Positions 1 to 54,882 of a DNA stretch of 64,000 nucleotides are shown one piece after another (position 1 is the stretch's first letter; each line of letters begins with the position of its first letter). The notes beneath the pieces are model-generated. The model was given only the letters and a program-made list of their open reading frames with translations, did not search any database and was not told the origin of the DNA. The stretch is from assembly GCF_963853765.1 (NCBI RefSeq), contig NC_088857.1, positions 46,004,001 to 46,068,000 of the forward strand, in the 5' to 3' direction. Position numbers and translations under genes: made by a program. This DNA comes from Magallana gigas. Its lineage: Eukaryota.

Positions 1-185
1 CTTTACAAATTCCATTAAATCAAGACAACTACTTTCGGCTGATGAAAAAATTGCATCCTTTGACAAAGTTTTGCTGTGATCAAAATCAATGTTCTTTTCG
101 CTTGAAGAGGAAGAGGCAAGGTTTCCCAATGAAGCAGCCATATGAATAAGTTTCCTTTCAATCATACAAGTAGTTTGTACCAAGC
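1..185 (-). CDS. Probable further alternative exon T5, truncated by window edge
   Basis: gttctttttacatag|GC TTG GTA, phase 1. 61 open codons to position 1 (LVQTTCMIERKLIHMAASLG...LMEFVK). No finger visible within the window. Confidence 0.55.
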
Positions 186-457
186 CTATGTAAAAAGAAC
201 AAAATTATTCTACCTGTATTACACCTATTAAGAATGTATTTGAATAACACAACATTAACCATCAAAATATATCAACTAATGTCAAATCCTTTTTTATTTG
301 AGGAAAATATTGTGTCAAACAATAATTCCAACCCTTTTCTCTGACTACCATGTTCAACATCTGTCTTCAGTTGGAATGTTATAATCATTATTTCTTCTTA
401 GATGAATGTACATGAATAATAAGTTATATTGGCATACACTAAATTTCTGTTAACATT

Positions 458-675
458 TCACTGATGCTCCCTATGTTCCTTCATGTGCCTTTTCAGATTA
501 TCTTCTCTCGTGTAAGACTTTTGACAAATCGGGCAAAAAAATTTTGGACGAATTTTAGAGTGTGTCACAATGTGTCGTTCTAAATTCCGTCGAAGAGATG
601 AAGAGTAACTGCAATGAACACACTTTAACAGGCCTCTAGATGTTCTTGGTCTGAGTGGATCATTGAAATTCCCAC
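458..675 (-). CDS. Alternative terminal zinc-finger exon T4 (2 C2H2 fingers; not in the ORF track)
   Basis: caatttag|GT GGG AAT, phase 1. Manual translation: GGNFNDPLRPRTSRGLLKCVHCSYSSSLRRNLERHIVTHSKIRPKFFCPICQKSYTREDNLKRHMKEHREHQ*. Confidence 0.85.
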
Positions 676-854
676 CTAAATTGATACATAAATACTGTTT
701 GTTATCAAAATTTTAAAAAGGTTACAAAAGTTACAATACTTAAACAGACATCTCCTGTAACAAACAATTTTCCAACTTCTAGAAAAATCTGGTAAAACTT
801 CCAGGAAGTGTGAAGAATACTACACAAATCACTACGGACACGAACCAAATCACC

Positions 855-1216
855 TCACTTGTTAGTTTTCTTGCAAGAAAGCTCCATGTGACTTTTAAGA
901 TGAAACTTGTGTTTAAAGCTTGAAGTACAATTAGGACAATAAATACGCTTTTCTAAGAAGTGTACCGACTTCACATGCCTCACAGCTGTTCCTTTTTGAG
1001 AGAAAATTTTTCCACATATCTTGCAGGTGCACCTATCATACTTTCCACTACCTGATGTTTGAACATACTCTGATACATTAAAAGATGTTTTTGTTTTAAT
1101 AACTGGCAACAACATTAAAGATTCTTCTGTATTTTCAAATTCTCCAGAAAAGGGGAGGTTGCCACCAGCTTTCAATTTGGATCCTACACTTCTTCCTGGA
1201 GTTGTTTCGTCTGATC
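855..1216 (-). CDS. Alternative terminal zinc-finger exon T3 (C2H2 + C2HC)
   Basis: ttgtttcactgtag|GA TCA GAC, phase 1, in frame with ORF 855-1175. CKIC..RHVKSVH, CPNC..SHMELSC, TGA. Confidence 0.85.
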
Positions 1217-1372
1217 CTACAGTGAAACAAAGGATAGAACCTTATTCAGGTTTTTTTTTACTGTGCAAGGTGGGGGTTGACTAACAGACTCAAAAGTAGA
1301 CAAGTGCCCCCATGGTTATTTGCTCTTTCATCAGTTTCAAAGGATTCAAGATCATATTATCATTGATATGAC

Positions 1373-1587
1373 TTATCCTGTAACATGTTTCTGTATATGT
1401 AGTTTCAAGTGATCACTTCTCTTGAAAGTCAATTTACAGATATGACACAAAAAAGGTCTAGCATCTGTGTGTGTTTTTAAATGTCTTGTCAAATTGCTTT
1501 GGTAGCTAGTGTTAAATGAGCAAAGTCTGCAATGAAGAATTTTGGAATCACTGGAAGGTCCTTTAGCCACTTTGAATCTGTTCATCT
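1373..1587 (-). CDS. Alternative terminal zinc-finger exon T2 (2 C2H2 fingers)
   Basis: gttgttgcag|AG ATG AAC, phase 1. CRLC..RHLKTH, linker TDARPF, CHIC..LHIQKH, TAA. Confidence 0.85.
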
Positions 1588-2115
1588 CTGCAACAACCCC
1601 TATATGCAAAATAAAAAACAACCAGTCAACCCTTGCCATTTCACCCTTTAAAATACCAAACTAATTGATATTTAACAAACCAAAAACCAGAATTATAAGG
1701 CATCAATGATGAGAGAGACAAATTTGATCACAACAAAAAAGTCAACAATCTACTTTCAAATCCTTCAAGTTAAACACCAGACAAATTGAACCTGAACCCT
1801 TAATCAAAATACCGGGATGGTTTTTTTTTTACATTCTTTAATTAAATGTTTTCCAGTCTATATTGAAATTAATCAATATAGCAGTAATCATTTACCAATA
1901 ATTAACAGCAAGTTCTTATACCAGTATCAGACTGAAGAAAGTAGAACAGAATAGGTGATTTTTGTTTTTTAATATAAGATAGAATAATAATGCATTGCAT
2001 TTCTTGCTTCATCATCAGCTGTAACAACTTTTTGTAACAGAGGAACCATTGGGAGTTTGTTCAACAAATAACAACGTAATAAAACTTTTAGTATATCAAC
2101 AACGGAATTTTTTTT

Positions 2116-2465
2116 TCATTTTTGAGCACTACGACATTTTTCTAAATGATCCTTTAAATGACACTTGTGCTTAAACGAGCGGTTACAGTACGGACAAGCA
2201 AACGCACGAAATGTTGTGTGATAGGTTTTCATGTGTCTGACAGTGTTTGCCCGCGTGGAAAATTTCTTTCCGCACACCCTGCAGGTAATGGAACACGCCA
2301 TCTTATGATTCTGGAGGTCAGATTCACTATTAAACTGCTTCCTACAGGTTGAGCAAGTATAGAGACTGAGGCCAGTGTTAAGTAGTTTTCTTATTGTCTT
2401 TGACGAGGCTTTCAGTGGAGTACCACTCAGTCGCCTAAATGATTTAAGCCGTGCTTTGGAAAATC
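2116..2465 (-). CDS. Alternative terminal zinc-finger exon T1 (3 fingers: C2HC, C2H2, C2HC)
   Basis: tttcttctgtag|GA TTT TCC, phase 1, open to TGA. CSTC..NHKMAC, CRVC..RHMKTYH, CPYC..DHLEKC. Confidence 0.85.
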
Positions 2466-3386
2466 CTACAGAAGAAAGGAAATAATTTTCAATTTAAGCC
2501 TTTGCAAGTCCTGTATCTTACATTGCCACCAAGTACTATGTATCCAACTACCCAAGTATCTTTGAAGCCATCTCAAAATCCAGATCAAGATTGACAGAAC
2601 CAAATGCCAAAACCAAACAAGAAGACACGAAGGGCCCAAATCCTTAAAAGAGTTTTGGTTACTTTGAATTACAATTACGGGTTCACAGAAATTTTTGTCT
2701 TTGTATACATTTCTGCTTCAGGGTCTCTCATTGTTTTGTAAAAGGTGTTTTTCTTCTATTCAAATGATTATTTCATTTGAATAATTTCTTTTTTTGGAAA
2801 ATTTAACAGAAATCTAATATCACATGCTACATCTATTTCACTAATGGCAAGTGTAGAAACCAGAATCAGGAATGTAAAACAAGACAAAAATTTCTGAGAA
2901 TAGGAGAAATTTGATATCATTAAATTCAACTCCTTAATACCTCACAAAAGGTGGTGAAAAGTACAATTCCTTTATCATGTTAATTAATTTTTCTTAATAC
3001 ATATCCTTTAATTGACTCAATTCAAAATACAAAGCATTTATTTAACCAAAATAATAAACTGGTTTTCTGATTTAGTATTCAAAGAAAAACAAAATGATTT
3101 CTACACTTACTATTGTGGATAATTGTTAATAGTTATAATAAAATTATCAAATCTCTCTGCATTATCAATTATTAAAAATCACCAAGATAATAATATTCAA
3201 AGGATAGTAGAACCAAAAGTCAAATTACCAAATTACATTAAAAAGATATATAATGCAGAAGATTCAATAACATTATAGGTATGGAAATTTCAGCATGCTA
3301 AAGTTCGTTTAATTCGAACTCAAATTTGACGAACTTTGGCTACTCTACTTCTCATGCTTTGTCACACAATACCTACCGCTGCTTAC

Positions 3387-3425
3387 CTTGAAATCCCAAG
3401 TCCATCAAAGTTGTGGGGTGGATAC
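3387..3425 (-). CDS. Candidate symmetric mini-exon of the BTB-ZF gene
   Basis: Strong donor TTTCAAG|GTAAGC at 3387. Acceptor ccag| at 3425 (39 nt) or ttag| at 3431 (45 nt), both in frame: (VP)GIHPTTLMDLGFQ. Weak polypyrimidine tract. Confidence 0.4.
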
Positions 3426-5490
3426 CTGGTACTAATGTGTTTGCATGTGTATGTCTGAGTGGATGATGGCAATAAGGGGGGCGGGGGGTGGGGGGTCATG
3501 TAAAACCTGTTGACTTGCTAAATTATTTAAGAAAGTCTAAATTCTATCATTAGTCAATTTATCAAGTAATTTCCATCTGCATCACAGATTAGAGTGAATA
3601 TTGTGTATGTCATCCATAATAAGATTCCAATAATCTCCTCTTTCCTCAAAAACTAAATTAGCCATCTCTGGGTTTTTTCACCAATTTAAAATAAGTTTAA
3701 ACATTTACAAGCAATCTATAAATTCAGCATTTACTGTATATGAATACCATTGAAAAAATTAAAATCTATGGCAATTAACATAATTATCAAAACTTTGAAT
3801 TATGTGGTGAAAAATATTTATTTAAAAATTTGATAAGAAATCTTGAACAAAAACAATTGCTATGAAACGTAAGAATGAAGGGATAAAAAAGAGAGAGTCG
3901 TATGTTTTTTTCTCGAATAGAACAAGACCATAACTGCTGAAATACTTTCATTCCTCCCTCACATACTTATTTGAAGTGATTCATTAAAAAAACTTCATCA
4001 TTATTCAAACATGCACGTGGTCTTCACTATGAATTAGGGATGTCAACAAGTATTCAAATACTTAACTTTTGCTCAGTTATAACAATCAGCAATTCAAATT
4101 TTTCAATCAATTAATCGTAATAGTCAACAACAAAAAAATGTCTTTATTATTTCTAAATGCATCAGTTTTTGGGCCACTGATAAGCTTTCTTTTCTTTGCA
4201 TTTTCTAATTGAAGTCGGTTCCATCTGTGCCCCCGAGTATATTTTTTAAGCAGCTAATATATTAGTCTGATCAAATTAACTTTTTGAATAAAAGCAGTGT
4301 TAAAGCACTTAAGCATACATTTGATCAAGAAGACAAATTTGATGTTTCTTTATATGTCATATATTAAATAAGTCATTAAATTCGTTGATGATATGTAGCT
4401 CAATTATGTGTAAACATCACAAGAAAATGGAAAAGCCAAGACATTTTCAATTTAATTTTAAATCAAATACATTAAGAAAATATTCATAATTATACGTCTT
4501 TGAATGTTTATGTGTTATAGATAGTCTGATAAGGTGTTTTTGCCAGTAGCATTATCTTTTTTTGAAAAGGACACACAATTTCAAACAAATCAACGAGCAC
4601 TCAACTATCGCTCAACTAAAGCCCCAGAATAACGACTAGTCTCATTGAATAAAATTGACATCCCTACTATAAATTCAATTCAAAGCAATCTGTTTAAAAC
4701 ATTTCCTCCATTACATGTTTTTCCTATCTGACCAGATTTTACAGAAGTACAACACAACACTAACTTGTACAGATAATCTATTCAACAGATTTAATTTTCT
4801 TCTCACTTTTGCAGACATACATTTTTCATTGTGTAAGATATGCACGTGGTTTACCAATCCACATACGGAGAGAGTATTCAGTGTCAGTAAAATGAACTGC
4901 GTACAATATACCACGAAAGTGTTAACTACGCAAAATTTATCAAAATTTACATCTGCATACATATGATTCTGTATAGAAACCTATAGAAAAACATAAATGT
5001 TTCATTCTGTGTGAACTTTTATATGCGTCACAATGATTGTTGCACATGCCCATCATTTGATTGTTGCATTATCGTTAACAAAAAAACACAGTTATATTAA
5101 TGGTTCTGAACAATTTGTTTTTCTCATACGTAAACATAAGTAATAAACAGCAATGTTAAAAAGTTCACCAGGATATGAACTTGGTTGGTACGAGTTCAAA
5201 TCTTCTGAGAAGCCCTTTGTGACTCTTGGTCATTGTTCACTAGACCAATCAAGTGTCATATCCCAGCTAACTTTTTCACTTGCTGTTTATTTCTTAATTA
5301 ATTAATTGAAAATCAATTTTTCATTGATTTAAATTTTGAGTTAATCAATGATATCAAATATCAGTATAGTAAGAAGTATGAAACAATTCTTCTTTCTATG
5401 ACAAAATCTCAAAATGCACGATACTTAAAATTTGACTAAAATGTCAATAAAGATCAATTTAACAATAGTATATTGTTAAGATAAGCTGAC

Positions 5491-5595
5491 TTCTGAGTTC
5501 ATTTTGCCCACTGAACACTGACTCATGTTTTAGTGTAGATTGTGTTGAATTTCCATTGGTTCCAATCTTCCTCTTCCTCTCTGGGTCATCTTTCA
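5491..5595 (-). CDS. Candidate symmetric (phase 1-1) internal exon of the BTB-ZF gene
   Basis: tatatag|TG AAA GAT...AGA A|gtcagc; 105 nt, open, encodes VKDDPERKRKIGTNGNSTQSTLKHESVFSGQNELR (basic KRK patch). Splice sites only moderate. Confidence 0.45.
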
Positions 5596-6304
5596 CTATA
5601 TACTAAATTTTCATTTGAAGCACAGAATATGTTGTAATTTCTTTAACCTTCACACAATTTCATATTGCAAAAATTCAATATTTCAATAGAACTTAAATCA
5701 AAGTATACATCACATTTTAAATATTATCATGTTTATATTTATACCATTCAAGATATTCTGATTAATGATATTGTTAAACTTTCTAGATGGTTTTTATAAA
5801 TGTGTATTTCTGAAGTATTTGTTTTGTCTATCAAGTCATATAAACAAAATATATCTATCAAAGACTCTATTATGGTTTAAATACTCAATCAATCATATTT
5901 TGTGCTTCTAAAAATTTTAAAACAGGATATGCTTGCACAAAAATAATCATGAAATTGTCTTTACCATGTTTATTAAACATAGGTCCAATTGTAAAACAAC
6001 CATTATTTTGGATTTTTGTTTTTGGGTTTTTTTTCATCGAACATTTCCACAATATTTTGGATTAGACTGAGAGAAAAGATTTGTGCAAACACAAGCAATA
6101 TACCCTATGGAGAAAAATGCTGGACTGCTAAGTATATCAATCTGAAGAATATATTCTTAAATCTTAAAATATAGATTTTTTATGTTAACACAGAAGCATA
6201 CAGCCACTTACTTAGCATTCAAGCATGACCCTCCACAAGTGCATGATGAAATTTCCATACCAGAATAAAGAGGATGTATATAACAATAAGAAAAGAAAAC
6301 CAAC

Positions 6305-8369
6305 CTTGAAACGCTCCCTCTTGACCAGAGAGAGACATGTTTTGTTCTCCGCTTAGATTGCTGCCTTCGTTGGATTCATCCCGCGTCCATTCATATGGAA
6401 TTTCTCCTGTGTCGTCATCCCCTTCATCCTGACTGCTCAGTAGAGCTCCCTTGGCATCATCCGGAATATCCACATACATATCTAATCCACCAGTATCCGA
6501 CTCCTCCACTTTGATAAAGCTTATATCAGGAGCCAGGTCTGAGGAACTTGAGGTCTCTTTACCACTACAACAAATTAACAAATTTTCTTAATAAGTTAAC
6601 ACCTACATAAAACCATATGTCTGAGATGCATGATTTGGAAAAAAAACAGATCATTAGCCATATATGCTTGCAAACCTAATGATCCATGCTATATAAATTC
6701 TAAAAAAACTTTTAGTACAGTTCCTAAAATATGGTCATGGAACTCAATAATTGCAAGAAATCATGACAACAGAAATCATTATATTTTTATGATGATAAGT
6801 TGCATTTTAAGTTAGCTACAATCTATACTTAGTGATTAAAATACCTTTGCTCAGATGACCCTTCGCCAGCCAAGAGTTTTTCTATATTCTGACTAGCTTG
6901 TGTGTTAGATAAATGTTGCTGAATGACTTGGCTGCTTCCACTGGCTCCTTTATTCTGAAATCTGTCCTGGGTCCGACTGTCTTGACTAGAACTTGATCCT
7001 GGACTCTGGCTAGATACTGGCTGCACTGCAGTTAAAGATCCTGGAATTGGTATGGCAGGTCTTGCTGGCGTTGGCTGTGGCATGCTTGCTGCCTGCACTG
7101 CGCTTCCAACAGCAAAAGGCTTTGGCTGAAGAGGTGGCATTTTTGGTGTGAACGTTGAGAGTGGCGGTGGGTTAATTGTCGGAGTTGAGTGAGATGGAAT
7201 GGAGGCTTGTGGGCGCTTGGCTGAACTTGGGGAAAATGATGATTCTGATGTACGTGTGTGAGTTGATGGTCCTGGTGGCTGGTTTCCAAAATTAGAGAGG
7301 TCTGAATATCTCTGTTGATCCCTCCTTGTGGATTCAAATGAAACTCTGTCTGAGGATGATGATGAAGATGATGAATGAGTATCTCGTAATGGGGACTGTT
7401 CGTGTCTAGCACTTGAGGAATGTATTGAAATGTCAGCTGAAGAATTTACGGCATGAGTTCTTGAATCTCCTTCCTCAACATTAACTATTTGAATGTCAGA
7501 GTTTGCTGACATTTGACTAGTAGAGGCTACAGATATTGACTGTGATGTTCTGATTGGTGGTAATTCTGATTCTTTAGGCCATCCTTCAGAATCTCTGAGG
7601 GCTGGCTCCTTGTGAACTACTTCTAAACTGTCTTCTATGATTTCTACAACATCTGCTGAGTTATTATAGCCCTGACTCATGGTGGTCCTGTCATCCACTC
7701 GCTGTACTCTTGGTCGCTTTCCACTGGGACTCGCAGAATCAAGTGACCTCTTTATGCCCATATCTTGAGCTAGTTTCTGAAAGTCTGAGGTTCTCACATG
7801 GCGGAATTCAACACTGTCCTGGAAATTCATTTGAGGCCCACTTCCCATTTTCATTCCAGTGTTATCACTTAAGCACTTGTAGAAATCTGAGCAACACTTA
7901 ACAACACTTTCAACCTGTAAAAGTTTTCCCATTTTTTCAATGTCTCTGCAGTTTTCTTCTGTAAGCGTCATGAAACCCTCATAAAGGTAGCGCAGAAACG
8001 AGATGACCGAGGATTGTTTAATGTCAGCTGCCATTCTGACTTCTAAATGAGATCCTAGAGATGCATTCTCTAGATGTTGCAGCATTGGGCAGGCTGCTAT
8101 CAGTACAAGCCTGTGTGCCTTCAAAAAATAAATCAAAACAATGAAAGGATATCTCCGATACCAAATTCTACTTTCATTACGACACACTGTTTATGTTCCG
8201 GATAACAAAATTAGTGAAAAAGGAAACACAATGTATGTCTAACCTTAGTGTTGATTGAACCTGTTTTAATGACAGCATCACACAGAAGTTGATTTTTCCA
8301 CATCTGGGTCAGGTAGCTCATAGTGGAACTTGAGTATATTTGATTCATGTACATCTTTTGGTAACTCAT
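6305..8369 (-). CDS. BTB/POZ-domain transcription factor, constant N-terminal region (3 coding exons)
   Basis: Exons 8369-8244 (MSYQKMY...MWKNQLLCDAVIKTGSINTK), 8118-6845 (AHRLVLIAACPML...FLRYLYEG...LLQVESVVKCC then S/P/Q-rich linker) and 6564-6305 (acidic, IKVE SUMO-type motif). All junctions are GT-AG and in frame (phases 0, 2). The last donor, TTTCAAG|GTTGG, is phase 1. The LCD...AHR.VL motif is typical of BTB. Confidence 0.9.
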
Positions 8370-8408
8370 GTTGGATTTCTTTTTGGTTTACACACTTCAA
8401 GGATGTTC

Positions 8409-8517
8409 GGTGCTTCAAAAAGTATGGATTTCTACATAGAAAAAATAGTATATTCGTACAATGTTAGGTGCTTCAAAAGTATGGATTTCTACATAGAAAA
8501 AATAGTATATTTGTACA
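8409..8517. repeat. Tandem direct duplication, ~58-bp unit x2
   Basis: ggtgcttcaaaa(a)gtatggatttctacatagaaaaaatagtatatt(c/t)gtaca starts at 8409 and at 8467. Confidence 0.9.
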
Positions 8518-10834: not shown

Positions 10835-10905
10835 CTTCTTTCCAGCAGAAATTTCGAATTTTTCTGGGTCACGATTTCCTCTTTGTTCGGTCGGCCATTT
10901 GCAAT
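10835..10905 (-). other. Candidate non-coding first exon / promoter of the BTB-ZF gene
   Basis: Locally CpG-containing segment ending in GAAG|GTATAT donor at 10835; contains AAATGGCCG (YY1-like). No transcript evidence. Confidence 0.35.
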
Positions 10906-23463: not shown

Positions 23464-23901
23464 AACAGAGCAGAATTATCATTTAATTGATTATATCATA
23501 TAATTTGATAATCTAAATTATATAAGTGACTTAAACGGTCCAATATTTGACTGCTATTTTTAAACATCCCGAAGTATACAAACAGTTGTTTATATGTATT
23601 AAAGCTCCTCTGTACATTTATACCTAATATCTATTTTTAGATTTAAACTCAGTCAGATAAACATATAAGGTAAAAGTAATATAAGTAAGACTCATTATAA
23701 GTTGTTTACTCAAGAAAAGGAAAAAAATTGTATTTATTAATAATTCCGTATGATGTGATAATATCTCAATGATTTGTTTATAATCATAGTACTAGTGTAT
23801 GACTGTATGCATACATAAAAACGATAAGTAATGCTTATATTTATTGGTGAAACAAGACAGACTATTTATATTTAGATTATTTAGATACATGTACTAATCT
23901 T

Positions 23902-24180
23902 CATGCGCGGATCTAGAAAGGAGGGGGTCAGGGGATCTGGACCCCGTCCTCGGGAAAATTGGAGCTTATTAAATTTACATAGTAAAATTATTTAAAATTA
24001 GCCTAGGACCCCCTACAGAAAAAATAGCTACGCTTATGAAGTTCTCTACCATAACCGCATTTTTACACAAAAGGGGTGAAAAAACCCAGGTTTTAAACTA
24101 TTACTGGTGGTGAAATACCCCAGGGTTCAAACGCATCAGGTGGAAATGCACCAGGGCAAACAAAATCACTTAGATCCGCG
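23902..24180. mobile_element. MITE-like element with CGCGGATCTAG/TTAGATCCGCG inverted termini
   Basis: Termini 10/11 complementary; paralog 48663-48943. Confidence 0.6.
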
Positions 24181-24536
24181 AAGCACACTGCATTATTACT
24201 AGTCTACTTAAATATTCTGTGTTAAAGTAAATACAAATAATTATTTAGTTAGGTAGGGAGAAGTGAGCATTTATTTGTATATAAGAGCATGTACGGATGA
24301 TTTTTATTAAGAAAACAGCAGTTATACTCATCCCTTTCTCCTAAATGAGAGAAAAATCAAAAATCAAATAGTTGGTAAATACTGAAAACTTTTTACACCC
24401 CTACTGCTTGCGAAATGTACAATAAAACCTAAAACCTTTACAAAAAGGGGGCATCCAGAACATTTAGCACTATACGAATGCAAAATCAATATGAATGCAT
24501 TATTAACGTATGTTTATGCGTTTACAACTCTTCTAT

Positions 24537-24537
<1 letters not shown>

Positions 24538-24572
<35 letters not shown>
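24538..24572. repeat. (GA)n microsatellite upstream of A3
   Basis: Direct reading; paralog 49306-49330. Confidence 0.95.
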
Positions 24573-24575
<3 letters not shown>

Positions 24576-24761
24576 AACAGAGCAGAATTATCATTTAATT
24601 GATTATATCATATAATTTAAGTGACTCAAACGGTCCAATATTTGACTGCTATTTTTAAACATCCCGAAGTATACAAACAGTTGTATATATGTATTAAAGC
24701 TCCTCTGTACATTTATACCTAATATCTATTTTTAGATTTAAATTCAGTCATATAAACTGTG

Positions 24762-24941
24762 TCATATAAGGTAAAAGGGAGGAGACATCTCCTTGTTTGG
24801 AAATTGACTAAGTTCGATGAACAAGATTGTGTCCATTTCTGGCAGTGTTCTCAGAGATGACACGGTGTGTGGAGTATATAAGGCTGCCCGGTACCTCTAT
24901 TCCAGTCATACCAACAACTGCAAGACTAAAGCGATCCTGAG
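24762..24941 (+). promoter_or_regulatory. Actin A3 core promoter + non-coding exon 1
   Basis: Three CArG-like boxes, TATATAA 24875, donor 24941. Confidence 0.75.
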
Positions 24942-25522
24942 GTAAGAAATGATTTTAAAATAATTTTTAAAAAATAAAGAATTACATGTATTTGAATCAA
25001 CGTCGCCAACATTTAATTTTTACAGCTTGTGCTATTTTTCCCCCGGAGAAACTTGCATTAGTCTTAGTCTTTTGGACGAATTAAAATCGGAGCAATGTTT
25101 AACATGTTTCCGTTCGAGTTTCTAAATAAACTCAGGCACGTAGCATAGTTTTTGAAAGTGGGGGTTAGGTAGAGGGACAGATTTATCCCTAACCTTGACG
25201 ACCATACAAATTTAAAAAAATGAATTTTAAAACTTCGCAATTTTTCTAAATCATAATCTGTGGGGGAGGGAATGGTAGGAGAGTAAATTAAACTTCGATT
25301 TTAAGGATAATTTTTATAATTTTCCTTTTTTCCTTTAAATGCTCCTAAAAAGTGCGGGGGGGGGGGGTGGCCTCGTGTTAGTTATGTGTTAAAGTGGGTG
25401 AACGGTTGGGGTGAAGGCAGCCCCCTCCCTTATACTTCCTTGCTTCAAATTTTCTCCATACTCTCAATGTTTCATTACCTTTCAGAAACAAATTTCGGTA
25501 ACCAAACCAAAAATAACGTACC

Positions 25523-27539
25523 ATGCCTATTAACTTGGTTGAGGACGACGTTGCCTGTGTTGTGATTGACAATGGCTCGGGCATGTGTAAGGCGGGCTTT
25601 GCCGGAGATGACGCCCCGCGGGCCGTGTTTCCCGCCGTCACCGGACGACCGAGATACGACGTAAGGCAGCTGTTTTCTTGACAAGTCAATTTCATTCAGT
25701 ATCTTATTTTTAAAAATAAGTCTTCATCTAGAATCAACGAGATTCATTCTTCTAGATATTATTGCATATAAACCGGTTTACTAGCTTTGCGTACAAATAA
25801 AAATATAATAATATAGATAAAATACTTGTACATGTTCAATTCATATTTATAACGTAATTTTAATTTTTAGATTGTAATGGCGGGAATGGGAAGCAAGGAT
25901 TGCTACATTGGAGACGAGGCCCAGAGCCACCGGGGAGTTCTCTCCCTGAATTACCCAGTAGAACATGGCGTCGTCAATAACTGGGACGACATGGAGAAGA
26001 TCTGGCACCACACGTTCTACAACGAACTAAGGGTGGCTCCCGAGGACCACCCAGTGCTGCTGACTGAGGCACCACTCAATCCCAAATACAACAGGGAACA
26101 AATGACGCAGGTGATCATTTATTTATAAAAGTAAAAGAAATCATAGAGAATTTATTTTCTTTATTCATGTTATTTTTATCTTGAAGTGATTTAATATTAG
26201 TATTCGATTTTTTTTATTGATTTTTTTTTCAATTCTTTTAATGTAACATTAAATATTCAGATTATGTTCGAGACCTCAAGTGCCATTTTTCATTCTTTAT
26301 TAGAAAGCTTCATTTCAATTGTATATTATTGAAATGATCTTAACATCATTGGTTTAACCCTAAATCTTTTATTTCAACGTACAGATCATGTTTGAGACAT
26401 TCAACGTGCCCGGGTTCTACGTCAGTATCCAAGCCGTCCTCTCTCTGTACGGCGCCGGAAAAACAACAGGAATCGTGTTCGATTCGGGAGACGGCGTGTC
26501 TCACATCGTCCCTATATACGAAGGTAAATCGAAAGCAGCTGTGTTCCCACATTAAAACATTAATATAGGTGATACACTGAATAGTCAAATCTATAATGAA
26601 TACATTGTATATAAAATTTAATATATGAATCGATATTTTGCTCAGGTTACGCTCTTCCACATGCTATTAAGAGAGTGGACCTAGCAGGCAGAGATCTGAC
26701 CAAGTATCTACAAAGGATTCTTCATGAACGAGGATACAATTTTGTCAACTCTTGTAAGTATTTCAACTACTCCACTTTTGAAAAGAAAAGAAACATTTCT
26801 TAATAGAATTCGAAATGCTAATGGAAACACATTTGTTTAACTATTTCAGCCGAACAAGAAATCGTCCGTGACATCAAAGAAAACCTCTGTTACGTTGCTA
26901 TGGATTTTGAACAAGAACTCTGTGCCTCTGCACAATCCTCCGCACTGGAAAAATCTTACGAACTTCCGGACGGTCAAGTGATCACCATTGGAAACGAGCG
27001 TTTCCGGTGTCCGGAAGTGCTGTTCCAGCCATCCTTTACAGGTAGGTGGTCAGATTCTAGGTCTTTTATAAAGATTGGGTTTTTTGTATTGATATAGCAT
27101 ATTTTCGATTATAGGAAACCAAAACAATAGAAGATTTTATGCTCAATGGTTTTTTTTTTACATGAAATATAGGTGACAGTTATAAAAAAAATTAAGTATG
27201 GTTTCTCTTACAGGTCTAGAAGCGAGTGGAATACACGAACAGATCCACAACTCCATCATGGCGTGCGACATTGACATCAGAAGAGACATGTACAGTAACA
27301 TCGTGCTGTCAGGGGGCTCCACCATGTTTCCGGGGATCAAGGACAGACTAGCCAAGGAGGTCACGGCCGTTTCTCCCAGTTCAATGAAGGTCAAGATCAG
27401 CGCCGCGCCAGAGCGGAAATACTCAGTGTGGATCGGTGGATCTATTCTAGGTTCTCTGTCCACTTTCCAACGGATGTGGATCACCAAACAGGAGTACGAC
27501 GAATGTGGACCAGGAATAGTGCACAGGAAATGCTTTTGA
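25523..27539 (+). CDS. ACT: Divergent actin A3 (380 aa)
   Basis: Exons 25523-25660, 25871-26110, 26385-26523, 26646-26753, 26850-27041, 27214-27539; frame intact. Confidence 0.97.
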
Positions 27540-30500
27540 TATTGATCCACAGCTCGATACAATATTACCGATCTAGGGGTGACACTTCGGAGGTAAAATT
27601 AAGGACCATTGGGGTACAAGATTCCACTTTTCCGGAACTTCCTACATTGACGTTTCCAGGTTCCAAATTTCCCATCACATGACCGTCCAAGAGTGAATTC
27701 AGACAAGAATCAAATACATACACGTATGATGCGTTGTTGCAAGCCAGTACATCGTTTTCTGCGATTGTCGTCATAACCATGTACTATTTATATTATATGT
27801 TGTTGATACTCATTAGCGGCTTTTTGTTTATATTTGTTTTGTTATTCAAAAGAAGCCCCATACATTTATTTATCAATGTTAATGGCATAAAAAAATATCA
27901 ATAATGCTTGTTTTATTTATTGCATAGTTATTTCACACATGTTGTCACTTATTTTGATACTCTGTTTAATACGTGGATGATTATTATCGAATAAACATAT
28001 GAATAAAAGATAATTCAAGTTTCTTCTCGGTTTCTCTCCTTAAATGTGACACCCCCTCCCAAATATTATAAACAATACAAGTTTGGAAATGCTCGTTAAA
28101 GGATTGCATCTTTTTTTTTTAATTTGACGATTACATATAAGAATACTTTAAAATCATATTACTCTGCGTCGCCACAAACAAACTCTGAACGATATTTGAT
28201 TTATACACTATACTGATAAAAGATTGAATGGGAAAGAAAACTAAAACGAACTACAACTCTCCTCTTGTAAGGAACGTCGCATTGCTCAAGTCGTTCACGC
28301 GGATTCAAAGGTTCCCCTTTGAAATATGTTGATGAGATATTACATTGCGTACATGTCACATTTCAGTCAATGTTTGGATCAGCGAAATATTTTTTATCTG
28401 TCGGCCGTAAAACACATTCGGCTGACAAAAAAATATATCGACAGGGCGCAATCACAATCAGTCAATATATAACCTCTGAACCAACAACTTCAGTACTACC
28501 ATCTAAGAATCATCAGTGGTAGTATATTCTAATTAAAATTAAATCCATTGATCCACTCCAGTAGATCGCTACACAATTGGAGCAGATGAAGAGATCTAAT
28601 TTTATTTAGATTGGTGAAAATAAAGTTACCTTCAAGTGTTCAACATTTTTAAATATTAGTGAATAAGACCTAGTTAACTGAAAACCAAAGCTCTTGAAAC
28701 AGTTTAATTGGAATAATTTGGAAAAAATTGCTAGAACAGGTAATAGAATGTTCTTGCAACAATTGCACAAATGATAAAACATCATACGTGTAAACATAAA
28801 TTTGTTTGTTCTATGATGAAATGATAAAAATTCTGTTCCTTCATTGAAACAATATGAAATGTAGTGAAACACCACAATACAGATATAAAATATGAAAACA
28901 TAACAATTCTTTCATGAAAAACAATTGCAACAAAATGTTTGGAATAACAATACATGTATTTTACACAAAATAAAATAGTAAAACCCATCTTGATCATAGC
29001 ACCCTTAATTTGTTTTCTCTAACGAAGTATACCAATGTCACATGTCTCCCTACCCCTTACTATTAAAAGAGATAATGGTGATTTAAAACTGAAAAATATA
29101 AAAAAAAAAAATTAAAAAATCAGGGATTTGTTGAATGTGTTGCTAAACTATAAAATGAAAATTTGAGTACATGTGGATTACAATATCATGTAAAAAAAAA
29201 ATGGAAACTTAAAAATTCAGTTGATATTGTTAAATCTTTAAAGGGCTAAAGAGACATTATTCATTTATTAAATTCAATAAATTAAAAAATTCTAAACCAT
29301 CAAGCACATGTAACATACAATAATGCTACATCAAATGCATGTTATACATGTATTTTAATGTAAGAAAATAGAAAAAAAACTGCCTATGTATCAATATGAA
29401 ACATACATGTACATGTACACTGTACATGCTAGCAGTATGACCACCACTTCAACATAAAAGTCTTAGACAACAGTGCATGTAAATACAACAGCTATACAAT
29501 CACACAAATCAGAGGACACTGGAACAAGTATCTCTTCTTTGAAGAAATAATCATGATCAACTATAAAGTGGCATATTCTTTCTTTTAAAAAAAAGACGAT
29601 TTATAAAAATCAAGAGAATGCAGACCTTTCTAAAAATAGTTCTGTAAATATTGGAATAAAAAAACCACAAGTTGATGTAAATCATAATGGAAACAGTTAA
29701 TAAAAACAACTAAATTATTGCACTATAATAATGGATTTCTATAACCATGGAGATCAGTTATTATGGAATATACAAATGAAACAGAGAAATCAATTGCTAG
29801 AATGTCAACAACTTGGGACAACAAACGAAAACAGGGGAAGCATCAAGGAAAAGACAAAATACAGGACTGTCTTGTTTGTGAGGTAAATATAAACACCCAA
29901 AGCTTTGGAATTGCACCACACAAGACAGCAGCTGATTTGTTCCTTCATAAACTGAGTATATCATTATCATTAATCTTTCTTTAGGCATCAACTACAGCAT
30001 CCACCTTTTTTCTTCTTAACACCATCTTCCAAATGAAGGGCTTTTTCAATCTCATCATCTTCTTTTTCCTTTAAAATTCTAAAAAGAAAATTTAAAACAA
30101 TATGTAACAAACAATTAAAACAATCATATTAGATAATACAATTAAATGGATATTCCAATATATAAAAACTGTATAAATATTAAATACTACGTGTGAACAA
30201 TATTTGATGGAAAACAGATATTCAACAAGGTAGCATATATTTGATTTAGCACTTTTCTGAATTACCTATGTCAAAACATATATGCATATTTAACAATGCA
30301 CTGGATTGAGTTGAAGCTGCTTCAACCAAAATTTCAAAATATAATAGATATACTATAGTAATTGTTCTAATGTAATTAAAAGCTACACTAATCACCTGGC
30401 CAGAGATTCCATACACTCCTTTACTTTTGTTCCAGACTTGGCACTGACTTCAAAAAAGGAGGCATCATATTCCTGTTTAAAAAGCAGTTGTTAACTTGAA

Positions 30501-30721
30501 TATAAACCAAATGAATATTATTAGCAGCAACATGAATTATCTATGCCTGCATCACCGGAACCAGGGGTTTTCTATCTGTCCAGTGTAACAGATAGAAAAT
30601 ATGTGGCTTTTGACGATGCTATGCCCTGAAAGTAACCTACAATGACCTAAGAAAAATCACAAACTTCACAAAATAATCATGATGATGTCAGAATCGCATT
30701 CCCGTAGGAGACGAGACACAA

Positions 30722-30868
30722 TAGTAGCAAGATTATAATTTTACAAACAAGAAATTTCGTACTTTTTTATTTTTAGTTCGAGTCCTGTTGATGCCAACTT
30801 TCATTAGTATAGCAGATTCTATATTGATATGTTATACATTTAAAGATCAATACATCAGCATGCAATGT
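30722..30868. repeat. Dispersed repeat fragment in Rab intron
   Basis: tagtagcaa...ttacaaacaag(c/a)aatttcgtacttt...ttcattagta...tatattgatatg is also present at ~15809-15935, ~41780-41905 and ~60824-60970. Confidence 0.65.
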
Positions 30869-31140
30869 GCAAAATTGATACATTTCAAGCAAAATCCCAT
30901 AGGGTCCTATGTTAAAAATTAACAAACGTTGAGATGGCCCCTTAAACAAACGGTGTGGTAAATGTCTTATTTTTTTTTTTATCTTAAAATAATAATTATA
31001 TCAGTAGATATTCATGTTAAAAAAATTCAATCAAAAATCTAGGGCAGAACAAATTAGACCCAGCCTCGTTAAACAGTAATTCAGTGAATTTAACTTACTT
31101 TTTACACTCATCGTATTAATTTGTTAAAAAAAACCAATAA

Positions 31141-31252
31141 TTTTGATAATTCATGCAGGTTATGAAGGCGACGATCATTGCAGAAAAAATTTACATAATC
31201 TGCATTTTTTCTGCAATGTCGTCACCTTCATTTCCTGCATGAATCATCAAAA
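31141..31252. mobile_element. Palindromic MITE-like element in Rab intron
   Basis: ttttgataattcatgcagg...cattgcagaaaaaat pairs imperfectly with attttttctgcaatg...cctgcatgaatcatcaaaa; paralog 61245-61356. Confidence 0.65.
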
Positions 31253-34200
31253 AAAGCATTTTATTATTTAAATATATCCAAAATTAATGCATTCTTGATA
31301 TTCTAGTTGAACTGAAGTAACTGTATTAATGAAAACTTACAGCAGCTAATTTGTTGCCGTCCTTGACTTTCACTGCTCTTCTGTCCTGCTCTTCAATCAA
31401 GTATGTCTTGTTACCAACAAGAACCAAGGCTGTTCCTTCTTCCACCCCCTCCTGGATACTAGTGATCCAGTTCCTGACATTGGTAAAGGTGGCTTCAGTT
31501 GTAACGTCGTACATCAGAATCACTCCGTCTGCTTTTCGAAAGTACTGCTTGGTGATACTTCGAAACCTAGGAAGTAATTTCAATTAAGCACATGATCATA
31601 TTATAAGTGGACTGAGCTTAACAAACTTGTGGGTGCATCAACGAAGCAAAATAAATCATTTAAATATTGTTTTCAATTTGATTGTTTAACAAATAAAGAC
31701 TTGAATTTTAAAAATAAGAAATGGAAAAATCTTAAATTTACTCTTACATTTATATTAGTGAAATGACAACAATTTTAAAAGGACTGTGGGAGTTACCTTT
31801 CCTGGCCGGCTGTGTCCCACAGCTGGAGCACAATCACCTGCCCTTCCATCACTATACTCTTCACCTGAAAATCTACACCTGTAAAAGTCCAAACAAAACA
31901 ATTCAAGCCTCCATATCTATAAGTTCTTAGCCAATTGAACACATGCTTGGCACTAACAGTACTTGTACTGTATCATAAAATGAGGAGAAAACATGTATAA
32001 TATATGTCTACCGCTACTTTATTTAAATTTTTAGAGTGAAAGAAAAGTTACTGATCAGACTAATTCTGCTTTTACACTGACCTATGGTAGCACTGAATGT
32101 TGGGTTGAATTGATCGTTACAGAATCGATGTATGAAGCTGCTCTTGCCAACCCCTGAGTCTCCCACAAACACGACCTTAAACAGCCTCTGTCTGGGGGGT
32201 GGGGTCACTTCCTCATCAGTCTGTTAATGTAACAAACAAATCATGACAACATCAACCAATGCAAGGATAACATCTTATGAACTGTATAATTAAAACACTC
32301 CAACAAAATGAGAGAAATGTCTGCAACACATGACAATCTGTACCAATCCAATACAAATATTTTCATTTCAAAATAAAAATTAATATCATCAATCAAGAAT
32401 GATTGTTGAAACATATAAAAAATTGTGTGTAAGCCGAATTCTAAAGAGAGCCAATATTACTGCTTGTTTACAAAGTCATTTTAGCCCCTTATTTGCTTTC
32501 ACTTTATCAAAATATACAGAGATTTTACCCCATTTAAATTTTGAACACCAATGTAGTTCTGTTTAAAATTTCTATGACACAGTAGTTCTAAAAATATTTA
32601 AAGGCATTTTCGAAAAAACTTTCATTCCTTCAACCAGTAAGAGTTATGTACCTTATCTTCTCCAACAGGCTGCCCCCTTGGACTTTCAGGAACGATGCCA
32701 TTTCTGTTGTTAAAACAAATCCAGCAATAAATCAAAATGAATATCTATTTATTCAACAAAACAATGAAGCAAACTATGATGAAAACTAAATCATTAGTTT
32801 ACCCATCTAACTGGTCTTCACTGTCTTCCATTATGTTAGTATGTGATGTATCAACCCTGAAATTTGATGTTAGTTCTATGTATCAGGTTCATTAAATGTT
32901 ATAAACATAGCATTCAGACAGGTAGGGCAATGAAATATGAAATGAGTTAAAGGATTAGAAAAATGTTAGAAGGATGTTATTAAAAAGAAAAACTGTTCCC
33001 ATGCAAAACTCACTACATTAAATAATCACCTCTCTAGCTGACCAGGGAATTGAACCTACAACCTCCACCACCAGTATATAAACCACCCCAGTGAATCGGA
33101 CCCATAGTAGCAGGCACCAGTATCTGGCTAAGCTATACAAGTCCAAAGGGCTGAACATGGCTTCCAAATAGCAGGTCCCTCTTAAGAAAACATTCTCAAT
33201 ACTGCTTTTAATGCATACATTGATTTTCTAGTAGCACCCATGGACCACTTTCGGTTACCCCCTCTCTCTAGAACTTCTGTTTTAAAAGCAGGTGCTGCTA
33301 CTGATTTTTGTTCACTAGGGGCTAGTGTTTGTTCTTGATGTGAATGTTTGTCCAGTCGCATCATGTAATCCTCCATTGTTTCCATGAATATGGATTCTCT
33401 CCTTTGGTCGCCGTTCAATAAGTTTTCATATGCTGGTGCCACCTGCTGGTCAATATTGTCCCCTTCCTCCTCCAGATCTTCGCTGAAACAGTTTCCACCA
33501 CCATGGAATCTAGTTTTGTGCAAACTAAGCAAAAACCAGGTGAAATTAATGTTCTGTCTCTACAGGAATTCAACTGTCTACAGCAAAATGGTATTACTGT
33601 CGTATATACTGTCAATCACATTTTATCATTCTTTTTCTTCAAAAAAATCTTTTAACAAACTTATATTTTGATTTCAAAATTTTATTTTTTTTTCTTGACA
33701 TTAGGCACATGTGTTTCTACAATACAGTAATTGACAGCATTTGAACATTTGAAAACAGAATGTTAGCCAAGAATAATTCTGTCAGACTAAAAGCATAGTA
33801 ATGAATTCTAATATTACTCTCTTCTAAATGATTCCCCTCAAACCCTCATTTGGGGAAATATTTCTGCTGCTTATCAAGAGTTAGATGTTAATGAGATCCA
33901 CTTCAAACCCATATCTTCATAGCCATGCATACTAAAATTACCTATTCTCGTCAACTGTCGCTTTGTGAGCTTTCTTTCTCTGTCGTTTGTGCTGCTTGTG
34001 CCTTTCTCTGTTGACAAAAAACAATGTCTGTGTTAGAGCGATAAAAATACAGTAAGTAACAAGTACCAAGAATTTACAATCAAAGATCTGCTACATTTAA
34101 GTTTTTAATATACTGTCACTTACAAATCACTTTGACATATTCATTAAATTCGAGATATCGGTGTTCAAGATGTAAAAGTTCAACTGTACATGATCAAGTT

Positions 34201-43892: not shown

Positions 43893-45878
43893 ATGCCTAT
43901 TAACCTGGTTGAGGACGACATTGCCTGTGTTGTGATTGACAATGGGTCGGGCATGTGTAAGGCGGGCTTTGCCGGAGATGACGCCCCGCGGGCCGTGTTT
44001 CCCGCCGTCACCGGACGACCTAGATACGACGTAAGACAGCTGTTTTCTTGACAAGTCAATTTTATTCAATATCTTATTTTTAAAAATAAGTCTTCATCTA
44101 GAATACATTGTAACTAGATTCATTCTTTTCTATAGAACACATTCCTATGACTTCTAGATATTATTGCATATAAACCCGTTTACTAGCTTTGCGTATAAAT
44201 AAAAATATGTCAATAGATAAAATACATGTAAAAGTGCACATATGTACATTTCATAGTAAACGTAATTTTCATTTATAGATTGTAATGGCGGGAATGGGAG
44301 GCAAGGATTGCTACATAGGAGACGAGGCCCAGAGCCACCGGGGAGTCCTGTCCCTGAATTACCCAGTAGAACATGGCGTCGTCAATAACTGGGACGACAT
44401 GGAGAAGATCTGGCACCACACGTTCTACAACGAACTAAGGGTGGCTCCCGAAGACCACCCGGTGCTGCTGACTGAGGCACCACTCAATCCCAAATACAAC
44501 AGGGAACAAATGACGCAGGTGAACATTTATTTATAAAAGTTACATGCATTTTTTTTTCATTGATTTTTCTTTCAATTTTTTTAATGTACCGGTAACATTA
44601 TATATTCAGATATGTTTGAGACCTCAAATGTCATATTTTTCTAAAAATTCATTGGAAATGTATATGTATATTAGTAAAATGATCTCAATATCATTGGTTT
44701 ATTACCCTAAATCTTTTATTTCAACCTTCAGATTATGTTTGAGACGTTCAACGTGCCCGGGTTCTACGTCAGCATCCAAGCCGTCCTCTCTCTGTACGGC
44801 GCCGGAAGAACGACAGGAATCGTGTTCGATTCAGGAGACGGTGTGTCTCACATCGTCCCTATATACGAAGGTAAATCGAAAGCAGCATTGCTTTCATATT
44901 CAAACATTGATATAGATGATACATTGAATTGTTAAATCAATAATTAATACATTGTGTATAAAATTGAATAAATGAATTGATTATTTGATCAGGCTACGCT
45001 CTTCCACACGCTATTAAGAGAGTGGACCTAGCAGGCAGAGATCTGACCAAGTATCTACAAAGGATTCTACATGAACGAGGATACAATTTTGTCAACTCTT
45101 GTAAGAATTTCAACTACTGCACTTTTGAAAAAAAGGTGATACATTTTTCAAAAGAAATGCTAATGGAAACACATTTGTTTAACTATTTCAGCCGAGCAAG
45201 AAATCGTCCGTGACATCAAAGAAAACCTCTGTTACGTTGCTATGGATTTTGAACAAGAACTCTGTGCCTCTGCACAATCCTCCGCCCTGGAAAAATCTTA
45301 CGAACTTCCGGATGGTCAAGTGATCACCATTGGAAACGAGCGTTTCCGATGTCCGGAAGTGCTGTTCCAGCCATCCTTTACAGGTAGGTGGCCAGATTCT
45401 AGATCTTTTATAGAGATTAGGCATTTTGTATTAATATAGCATATTTTCGATAATAGGTAACAAAACCAATAGAAGATTTTATGCTCAATGTTTTTTTTAC
45501 ATGAAATATAGGCGACAGTAAAATAAGATTTTAAACATGGTTTCCTTTACAGGTCTAGAAGCGAGTGGAATACACGAACAGATCCACAACTCCATCATGG
45601 CGTGCGACATTGACATCAGAAGAGACATGTACAGTAACATCGTGTTGTCAGGGGGCTCCACCATGTTTCCGGGGATCAAGGACAGACTAGCCAAAGAGGT
45701 CACGGCCGTCTCTCCCAGTTCAATGAAGGTCAAGATCAGCGCCGCGCCAGAGCGGAAATACTCAGTGTGGATCGGCGGATCTATTCTAGGTTCTCTGTCC
45801 ACTTTCCAACAGATGTGGATCACCAAACAGGAGTACGACGAATGTGGACCAGGAATAGTGCACAGGAAATGCTTTTGA
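43893..45878 (+). CDS. ACT: Divergent actin A5 (380 aa)
   Basis: Exons 43893-44030, 44279-44518, 44732-44870, 44993-45100, 45192-45383, 45553-45878; frame intact. Confidence 0.97.
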
Positions 45879-48171
45879 CACTAATATAAAAGTAACTACA
45901 TGTAGGTACAGGATCTTATAGGAATGAACTTTAAAAAGGAATAAGGTATGGATGTGAGGGTATACGGTTTTTGTTCGGGAATCAACGTAAACAGCTGGTT
46001 CCACATTTCCTATTTTCAGTGTTATACACTCCGAGACGGAACGGGACCGAACACTTCAAGGGAAAATTACGAGATCGTGTCGTATGTACAATGTTGGTGG
46101 TGCAAACCAGTATACCGACCATTTCTTTCTGGGTATATGCATGTTGTATATTACAAATGCATGCAAAGATCATGTATATATCTAATCATATTTTCTCGTA
46201 CATGTGTACATATTTTGGCAATCCATTATGACGCTATGACACCATTAATGTTTTCATCAATTTTCATAAAAAAATGTCCATGGGTGTTTGCAATATAATA
46301 GTTATTCCACAAATTCATATATATTTTGATGCAGTTTTTGTTTATTGATTTTATTCATTTGATTGCATATATATCATGAAATAAATAATTGCATACTATT
46401 TGAACAGTATTTCCTTTTTGATAGAAAATCATATTCTAGCACTAAGGTTTGAAAACATCGGGCTGAGCATATTACACCTTGTGCATTATTAGGTAGAAGG
46501 TTATTATACATTTTTTTATTATGAGAAAAAATTATCTAACGTCAGGTGCTTGTATCTCCTGTATCAGTCGATAATACCGATGATACAAAGTCTGACATTC
46601 ATTCAACGTTCACAGTATTAACGTATACGTACTATGTCTATTTCATATTCACCATTGAGTGCATTAGGTGTATAATTAATGTAAAAAGACTAATTATGTT
46701 CGTTCGATAAATGAACCTTACAAGCCTAGGAATGAAAAAAAAATTATGGATCGTAAAGAAAATTCTTGGAAATTATAATAAGATTGTAATAAAAGCCATT
46801 GTCTTCTCAAGCCTCGGTACGGAGGCCGTGTAGGGCTTTCCAGATGGGATGGGATTGCAGTGGTTTCCGACAATGAATACATGCATAAGCATAACATGCA
46901 TAAATAAAATGAAATAAAAAGCATATATTGAATAACATCTAGATAAGAGTGATTAAAGTGTTGGTAACTGTAAATGAAAATAAATAATTAAAACAATCAA
47001 ATGTATTTAGCAGTATCTTTTTATTGATATTTACACTTTCCCGGCCAATAAACTGATATATTTCAGCCACAGACGATATAAAAGCGTGAATTAAAGTTTT
47101 TATATAGAATGTATTGTGTTAACTAACATTAGTTTTCAACAGAAACTGCAAACTTACTGTTAAACAATTATAAATGTCTGACGAAAAACATCATTACACA
47201 TATTTAAATACATAAAAAACAAACGCATCCATAAAAAACGTATTTTGATATCTCAGTATGACAGTTTTTAATTCTATATATGGCACGCATATACATAAAT
47301 GCATTTAATTTATCACAACACACTTGTAACTGTTCAAAAGTCAGAGATGAAGGCAAGTGTGGAGCGCTTGGATCATAGGACTAGGTGATAGGCCAGCGAC
47401 CCAAAGGTTGCTTGTTGAAGCACCACCGTGGTCACTTTGGAATCAGATGTTACATAAGACGTGACGTGTAGATAACGTTACGGCGCATTAGTGAGTGTTT
47501 GGAAGTCGTCTTCATTGCCTATCTAGATTATTACCCGGTTATAAATTACAGAAGCATACAGTTATTAGTTTACAAACTACGAAAGCCGAGAAGGGTCATT
47601 CGAGATTCGAGATTCCAAATACGAGATTCGATATACGAGATTCAAGATTCGAAATTCAAGATTCAATATCTAAATTAACCAATCAAATCATGGATCTGAA
47701 ACCTGTATCCTAGCAACATCAAACTGTTCTAAATAAAGATCATTCGTACATGCTCTTTCCTACAAATAAATGTCTTAATAGCTTTTATATAGTGGTTATG
47801 GAATGGTTAAATTAAACTTGATGAATTAACCCCACACAGTATAAACAATTAAATTAGAAATAACACTGTTGGCTTTGCGAATCGAAGTGGTTTTGTTTGC
47901 CCTGTACGTATTTCCCCCCGAGCAATTTTAACCCGAAGTGTATTTGCCCCAACTGTGTAAAAATCGACTCGCGAAGAAAGATCTGTTTAATCTAAATAAT
48001 TAAAACTGAGTGTGGTTTTAGCTATGAAACGAAACTCAATGAAATAATCGACATGTCAAAATATAGGTTATGATAAAGTTTTAAACCATAGAAGATATAA
48101 TGATTTACAACCTCAACGACATTAATCCAGATAAGAATAGTGTATTGTAGGGTATGGCAATGCCATTGTCG

Positions 48172-48221
<50 letters not shown>

Positions 48222-49519: not shown

Positions 49520-49699
49520 TCATATAAGGTAAAAGGGAGGAGACATCTCCTTGTTTGGAAATTGACTAAATTCGATGAACAAGATTGTGTCCATTTCTGG
49601 CAGTGTTCTCAGAGATGACACGGTGTGTGGAGTATATAAGGCTGCCCGGTACCTCTATTCCAGTCATACCAACAGCTGCAAGACTAAAGCGATCCTGAG
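49520..49699 (+). promoter_or_regulatory. Actin A6 core promoter + non-coding exon 1
   Basis: Three CArG-like boxes, TATATAA 49633, donor 49699. Confidence 0.75.

Positions 49700-54643: not shown

Positions 54644-54644
<1 letters not shown>

Positions 54645-54690
<46 letters not shown>
54645..54690. repeat. (GA)n microsatellite upstream of A7
   Basis: Direct reading. Confidence 0.95.
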
Positions 54691-54695
<5 letters not shown>

Positions 54696-54882
54696 AAACA
54701 GAGCAGAATTATCATTTAATTGATTATATCATATAATTTAAGTGACTCAAACGGTCCAATATTTGACTGCTATTTTTAAACATCCCGAAGTATACAAACA
54801 TTTGTATATATGTATTAAAGCTCCTCGGTACACTTATATCTAATATCTATTTTTAGATTTAAACTCAGTCACATAAACTGTG

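Follow-up and report, generated by a model that had tools for sequence, protein, structure and literature searches.

The locus and its constant exons

The stretch analyzed here (the window) comprises 64,000 nucleotides of chromosome NC_088857.1 of the Pacific oyster, Magallana (Crassostrea) gigas (positions 46,004,001 to 46,068,000; chromosome 57.3 Mb, genome 564 Mb). It contains the constant exons of LOC105334027, a gene on the minus strand, followed by the first members of an array of candidate terminal exons, most of which encode zinc fingers. An earlier note on this DNA, made from its letters alone, had assigned it to a probable mollusc; the translation of the constant exon is identical to RefSeq proteins of M. 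gigas. The results make it very probable that LOC105334027 is one gene making a family of BTB transcription factors via the choice of its last exon. Positions are those of the window, and negative positions denote bases beyond its start, where a further 60 kb was also examined. The features of the gene described below lie on the minus strand.

The non-coding first exon (5' untranslated region, 10835..10903) was identified from Logan transcript L028, which aligns to 10903-10835 and then jumps to 8433/8431. Its donor GT was read on the sequence at 10834-10833, and its 5' end lies at least at 10903. The first coding exon (8244..8431), read on the sequence and present in transcripts L028 and L029, has its ATG at 8369 and contributes 42 codons, encoding the N-terminal strand and the start of the BTB domain, with a phase-0 donor after 8244. 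The large constant exon 2 (6845..8118), also present in the transcripts, completes the BTB domain, continues with a long linker rich in Ser and Pro, and ends in a phase-2 donor. The BTB profile PF00651 matched exon 2 alone with an E value of 2e-7 and exons 1 and 2 together with 1.7e-13. The last constant exon, exon 3 (6305..6564), encodes an acidic linker and was placed by sequence reading, by RNA joints and loose ends at 6304 and by transcripts L028-L031. It ends in CAA G/gttggt, a phase-1 donor at 6305 that is the sole donor serving every tail. Pfam detected the BTB domain and no DNA-binding domain in exons 1-3, in agreement with the earlier description of a BTB and linker region that lacks a DNA-binding domain and ends in a phase-1 donor.

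Terminal exons in the window

Five phase-1 acceptors had been proposed in the earlier note, at 2465, 1587, 1216, 675 and 185. Four of these stand, and the second was misplaced by 12 bases, RNA putting it at 1599; both 1587 and 1599 are in phase 1. The frames opened at 2465, 1599, 1216 and 675 encode three, two, two and two fingers, respectively, so that the claim of different 2-3-finger sets with their own stops holds.

The exon at 1599 (e1599, 1373..1599) encodes two C2H2 fingers in 75 codons and is documented by RNA contigs of runs X12 and X4 and by RefSeq isoform X23 (P0145). The joint 1598/6304 was present in the RNA contigs of the two runs with ends CT..AC (GT..AG when read on the minus strand), and the tail of isoform X23 begins GVVAEMN, consistent with acceptor 1599. 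Exon e1216 (855..1216), with a C2H2 and a C2HC finger in 120 codons, is carried by the full-length Logan transcripts L028 and L029 from two runs. An internal donor, AA/GTGAGG at 859/858, overlaps its stop codon. Splicing from 859 to 675 reproduces the RefSeq X8 protein XP_034321404.2 exactly and adds only WEFQ (four residues), indicating that acceptor 675 is in use. Exon e675 (458..675) encodes two C2H2 fingers in 72 codons, and orthologous tails joined at residue 1 were found in isoforms of C. virginica, Saccostrea echinata and Saccostrea cucullata, with 63-68% identity. Exon e185 starts in the window (1..185) and has 125 codons in all; it continues past the window start, its two fingers and its stop (at -189) falling within -21 to -191. 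The tail of C. angulata RefSeq isoform P0135 maps with 100% identity to 183..-188.

Exon e2465 (2116..2465) was identified from the sequence and Pfam. It encodes three fingers (C2HC, C2H2, C2HC) in 116 codons with its own stop, and its acceptor is the best-scoring one in its neighborhood by a splice-site matrix. A protein search for its junction gave unspliced open frames only, and neither a junction read nor a model was found. An open frame 66% identical to e2465 lies on RNA-run contig P0210, presumably from another oyster species. In the Logan open frames P0211 and P0212, TGG (Trp) stands in place of the e2465 stop codon TGA (2116-2118), and the frame continues for about 70 more residues; Trp also occupies this position in P0210. 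The TGA/TGG difference is probably a stop-gain or stop-loss polymorphism.

The additional donors at 5491 and 3387 that had been suggested were not confirmed. No joint was found at either, and RNA contigs cross both places unspliced. Optional cassette exons at these places (5595-5491 and one with donor 3387) were rejected, the pyrimidine tract of acceptor 5595 also being poor. A strong acceptor-like site with a score of 12.4 lies at 6104, 200 bases past the constant donor, and would open a 23-residue finger-less phase-1 tail; no read evidence was seen for it.

Extent of the array

The five acceptors in the window are the first members of a larger array, whose size the earlier note had understated. 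About 28 phase-1 candidate terminal exons were found, with acceptors from 2465 to -16894 (chromosome positions 46,006,465 to 45,987,106). The 28 acceptors are spread over 23.5 kb, the array extending a further 17 kb past the window start, and finger clusters occur on the minus strand only through 27 kb past it. Each tail has its own stop, and all but one (27 of 28) contain two or three C2H2 or C2HC fingers. The only finger-less tail, from -9991 to -10215, has 75 residues and matches no Pfam family; S. echinata isoform X28 contains it as a full tail with 79% conservation.

All 28 acceptors consist of YAG preceded by a pyrimidine tract, and the next base is G in 24 and A in 4. For 23 of the 28, the phase-1 acceptor was the best AG of any phase within -300..+150, as scored with a leave-one-out splice-site matrix. 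Over 51 kb, the long open frames that follow strong acceptor-like AGs were almost exclusively in phase 1, indicating that the common phase is not due to chance. The recognition residues (finger positions -1, +2, +3 and +6) differ in all 28 exons.

A scan with the acceptor matrix gave no further phase-1 tails with a long frame. A five-finger cluster at -26600..-27220 was left out of the gene, as no isoform or orthologue tail maps there. Between e-6999 and e-8083, at -7480..-7790 (chromosome positions 45996210-45996520), lies a finger exon that has decayed and contains in-frame stops; its counterpart is intact in two S. cucullata isoforms, with 45-49% identity.

Splicing of the constant region to single tails

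In independent RNA assemblies, donor 6305 was joined to four tails, with acceptors at 1599, 1216, -1406 and -10516, and RefSeq models link it to more. The contigs of SRR10867513 and SRR10799834 contain the whole reading frame with 6305 joined to 1216, following the path 10903-10835, 8431-8244, 8118-6845 and 6564-6305 and then 1216 onward. The contigs of SRR2601709 and SRR21843888 join 6305 to -10516, and Logan frame P0130 (628 residues) joins 6305 to -1406. In RefSeq, isoforms of the gene are numbered up to X30, and the tails of these isoforms, like those from the sister species C. angulata, match single exons exactly. Taken together, the RefSeq models for M. gigas, for C. angulata and for other oysters account for 25 of the 28 tails. 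The linkage of one donor to more than one tail exon, which had been named as the check on the alternative-exon claim, was thus found.

Nine reads end loose at 6304, and their continuations agree only 0.48, indicating several partners beyond the donor. The contig word depth was 666 and 542 on exon 3 versus 28-57 on the tails; this is a poor measure, but the difference fits many tails sharing one constant part.

The tails could alternatively be chained into multi-finger proteins or be separate small genes or decayed copies, with the isoforms being annotation artefacts. The UniProt model A0A8W8NDC9 (806 residues) does chain three tails, a decayed exon is present at -7480..-7790, and acceptor 675 is spliced to the internal donor that overlaps the stop of e1216. 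Every tail, however, ends in a stop, which excludes chaining into one protein, as had been argued earlier, and the UniProt model was therefore judged an artefact. The splice from 859 to 675 adds no more than its four residues. Assembled transcripts end translation in the first tail, and the later tails form 3' untranslated sequence: transcript L028 runs unspliced from e1216 to -312, through e675 and e185, indicating that both lie in its 3' untranslated region. An mRNA spliced to an upstream tail can thus carry downstream tail exons untranslated. In addition, the tails lack their own start context, RNA shows them spliced to exon 3, and one tail per reading frame has already been shown for four of them. 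Chaining, separate genes or mere artefacts are extremely improbable.

Transcription of the array

Stranded raw reads from two polyadenylated RNA runs came from one strand only across the stretch covered, except in a repeat at 5130-5300, indicating that the array is transcribed from the minus strand. The depth of polyadenylated RNA was low just after the donor (5840-6239), increased 4-7 fold at about 5840, held to about 3040 and then dropped to near zero. The depth profile thus delimits a polyadenylated RNA block (3040..5840) within the first variable intron. Mostly single copy and ending beside an AATAAA at 3042, the block contains neither a finger frame nor a long frame in phase 1. It may represent a terminal exon without fingers, a transcript with an internal start or a stable product of the intron.

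This depth profile bears on whether the same architecture is read by trans-splicing, partly or wholly, with the constant exons being joined to tails from transcripts started inside the array. The 4-7 fold increase downstream of 5840-6239 could mean internal initiation, and the tails of mod(mdg4) have independent promoters (PMC13490949). The oyster tails, however, all lie on the same strand in one order, and RNA contigs extend without interruption beyond exon 3, into intron sequence and over several tails. No selector or docking motif common to the sites was found, as no 6-8-mer was enriched upstream of the acceptors over random intronic sets, and nothing in the data requires trans-splicing. 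We regard it as unlikely.

Several observations weigh against one gene with alternative last exons as the full account. The transcribed block at 3040-5840 is left unexplained by it. Junctions were present in inspectable RNA assemblies for four tails only, the others relying on RefSeq or orthologue models, and no junction evidence was found for e2465, e-1046 and e-15296, which are candidates from sequence. Raw-read depth was high between exons too, and exon depth therefore says little about use. The DNA binding and dimerization of the products are predictions from sequence and model.

Two repeat features were also noted. The element at 5130-5300 is short and multi-copy, with inverted-repeat joints, reads from both strands, a contig depth of 190-320 and many loose ends; it is probably a repeat resembling a miniature inverted-repeat transposable element inside the intron. 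In the rest of the window, the composition profile of 14000-34000 recurs at 44000-64000, shifted by about 26-30 kb, suggesting that a large tandem duplication is present.

Conservation of the tails and related loci

Orthologous loci were found in other oysters, with isoforms numbered up to X31 in C. virginica, X31 in S. echinata, X35 in S. cucullata and X24 in Ostrea edulis. Of the 28 M. gigas exons, 24 were the single best match of a tail from a different oyster genus. The identity to the matched exon was 45-86%, mostly 65-86%, compared with 35-61% to the next-best exon of the array; only e185 and e-8586 were not clearly closer to their own match than to another array exon. This comparison indicates that most individual tails are old and have been kept under selection. 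A seven-finger tail in C. virginica and a tail with a piggyBac-type zinc ribbon in S. cucullata have no counterpart in M. gigas, indicating that the array gains and loses members. The exons arose by tandem duplication and, apart from some births and deaths, have been retained individually, with one-to-one orthologues in Crassostrea, Saccostrea and Ostrea.

Elsewhere in the genome, at least 16 more places match the BTB exon, all of them on the same chromosome and 11 with 54-65% identity. The 17 places with a BTB exon on this chromosome lie between 6.6 and 54.8 Mb; their number is a minimum, as scoring was limited to the best candidates. One match is on the opposite strand, 83 kb away, at 45,920,594. 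The paralogous locus at 9.04 Mb has 12 same-strand finger clusters, and all strong acceptors before its finger frames (8 of 8) are in phase 1; a neighbor locus at 9.026 Mb has five finger clusters.

The earlier proposal to look for such loci in other bivalves was also productive beyond the oysters. In scallops (Pecten, Mizuhopecten, Argopecten and Ylistrum) and mussels (Mytilus), related loci have isoform sets that diverge at one point. The tails start with G, D, E, V or A, all of whose codons begin with G, indicating the same phase-1 junction. They contain 3-4 fingers, a piggyBac-type zinc ribbon (PF13842), a BEN domain (PF10523) or unknown sequence.

Type and origin of the BTB domain

The N terminus of the BTB domain reads MSYQKMYMNQIYSSSTMSYLTQMWKNQLLCDAV and does not contain the FxLRWN motif. 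This motif defines the arthropod Tramtrack group, and a search of Mollusca and Annelida found no Tramtrack motif or Tramtrack-type BTB domain (PMC11426971). The best solved relatives by sequence were ZBTB17, BCL6, BACH1 and ZBTB18, with no Tramtrack-type chain among the 48 solved relatives at an E value of 0.001 or lower. By language-model features, the nearest neighbors were chordate ZBTB clusters and the Tramtrack-like cluster ranked 100th, which is a lead only.

A homodimer model of two copies of residues 1-135 scored 0.76 versus 0.00 for the best control, a pass that may reflect memorized structures of solved BTB dimers. Of 30 proteins solved as one-chain pairs, 21 reached the mark, compared with 0 of 23 proteins solved as single chains. 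The runs agreed in at least 100% of contacts, with a partner pLDDT (predicted local distance difference test) of at least 87. In the modeled dimer, residues 2-9 (the N-terminal strand) touch residues 90-94 of the other copy as a swapped strand. The C2H2 fingers are C-terminal in the same polypeptide as the BTB domain, as in ZBTB/POK proteins.

Judged by its sequence, the BTB domain is ZBTB-like, and the gene, lola-like in architecture, falls outside the Tramtrack group. The design is probably convergent with that of lola, since a BTB domain that is ZBTB-like and lacks FxLRWN makes convergence the more likely history. The earlier suggestion of convergence with insects thereby gains support, from the missing motif, from ZBTB17, BCL6 and BACH1 as the nearest relatives and from the lack of Tramtrack-type BTB domains in Mollusca (PMC11426971).

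A design inherited from a protostome ancestor shared with arthropod lola, fru and broad would account for the common logic of a BTB domain plus short finger pairs in alternative 3' exons. Some oyster tails also mix C2HC and C2H2 fingers, as lola does. Such descent is distinctly improbable, as it would have to be reconciled with the missing FxLRWN motif, with solved relatives and feature clusters that are nearest to the vertebrate ZBTB type, the Tramtrack-like cluster being 100th, and with the search that found no Tramtrack-type BTB in Mollusca or Annelida (PMC11426971).

A wider proposal is that pteriomorph bivalves independently evolved a family of BTB loci with many tails, with a phase-1 G junction and finger-pair, piggyBac-ribbon and BEN tails, and that their mRNAs are at least partly trans-spliced, as in mod(mdg4), from transcripts with start sites inside the array. 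The shared junction phase means that such trans-splicing could even occur between paralogous loci. We give this combined proposal only a small chance.

Proposed mechanism

In the preferred reading, a choice of last exon within one gene, transcription starts at about 10903 and continues on the minus strand through the whole array. The constant exons supply the BTB domain and a long disordered linker, donor 6305 is joined to one of about 28 phase-1 3' splice sites, and one tail is translated per mRNA. The BTB domain, by comparison with the ZBTB and lola families, would dimerize and recruit cofactors, and each isoform would therefore set a different short finger set on a common dimerization and cofactor platform. 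Each finger set may read a different short DNA site, and homo- and heterodimers may read different bipartite sites. One donor, many tails and distinct recognition residues thus favor the earlier proposal that DNA-binding specificity may be swapped on a shared dimerization domain.

Comparison with known systems

A full-text literature search, which did not cover subscription journals, found no description of such loci in molluscs. A 2025 survey of oyster transcription factors treats BTB clusters and alternative terminators in general and does not treat LOC105334027 (PMC12111275). RefSeq lists the isoforms under unrelated automatic names (among them PR domain zinc finger protein 2, BCL6 homolog, protein abrupt, Krueppel-like factor 8 and myoneurin). 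For oyster annotation, some thirty differently named "genes" collapse into one regulatory system.

One close counterpart is lola, in which common 5' BTB exons are joined to one of many alternative 3' exons, mostly encoding zinc-finger pairs, so that many DNA-binding specificities share one oligomerization domain. lola has 20 isoforms, 17 of them with fingers (PMC11426971), and mixes cis- and trans-splicing (PMC13490949). Its BTB domain is of the Tramtrack type, contains FxLRWN and forms hexamers, whereas that of the oyster has no such motif and is similar to ZBTB dimers. The oyster gene also differs in having about 28 tails and several paralogous loci of the same design.

mod(mdg4) likewise combines a common BTB region with more than 30 alternative 3' exons in the fly, and tail domains of transposon origin occur in both systems: the fly has FLYWCH, and some bivalve loci have BEN or a piggyBac-type zinc ribbon (PF13842). 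mod(mdg4) produces all its mRNAs by trans-splicing, its tails have their own promoters and some tails are on the opposite strand (PMC13490949). In contrast, the oyster tails are all co-linear on one strand and nearly all encode C2H2 fingers.

The arthropod genes broad and fruitless are BTB genes with a few alternative 3' exons for zinc-finger pairs. They differ from the oyster gene in having only 3-5 tails and a Tramtrack-type BTB domain and in being restricted to arthropods. The vertebrate ZBTB (POK) proteins, such as ZBTB17/Miz-1 and BCL6, have the solved BTB domains nearest to that of the oyster protein and share with it the swapped N-terminal strand of the predicted dimer and C-terminal C2H2 fingers. 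To our knowledge, the finger array of a vertebrate ZBTB gene is fixed, with no set of mutually exclusive finger exons to choose from.

A BTB domain followed by an array of alternative DNA-binding exons has been a textbook oddity of insects, tied in the literature to the arthropod-only Tramtrack BTB and to trans-splicing. The bivalves provide a second case, which is large, conserved and expressed, has a vertebrate-like BTB domain, occurs at several loci and sometimes has transposon-derived tails. This second case suggests that a BTB domain with many tails is a solution reached repeatedly rather than an accident of history. It also provides an independent system in which to ask why BTB genes evolve in this way, how one of about 28 acceptors is chosen and whether trans-splicing accompanies the design as it does in lola and mod(mdg4).

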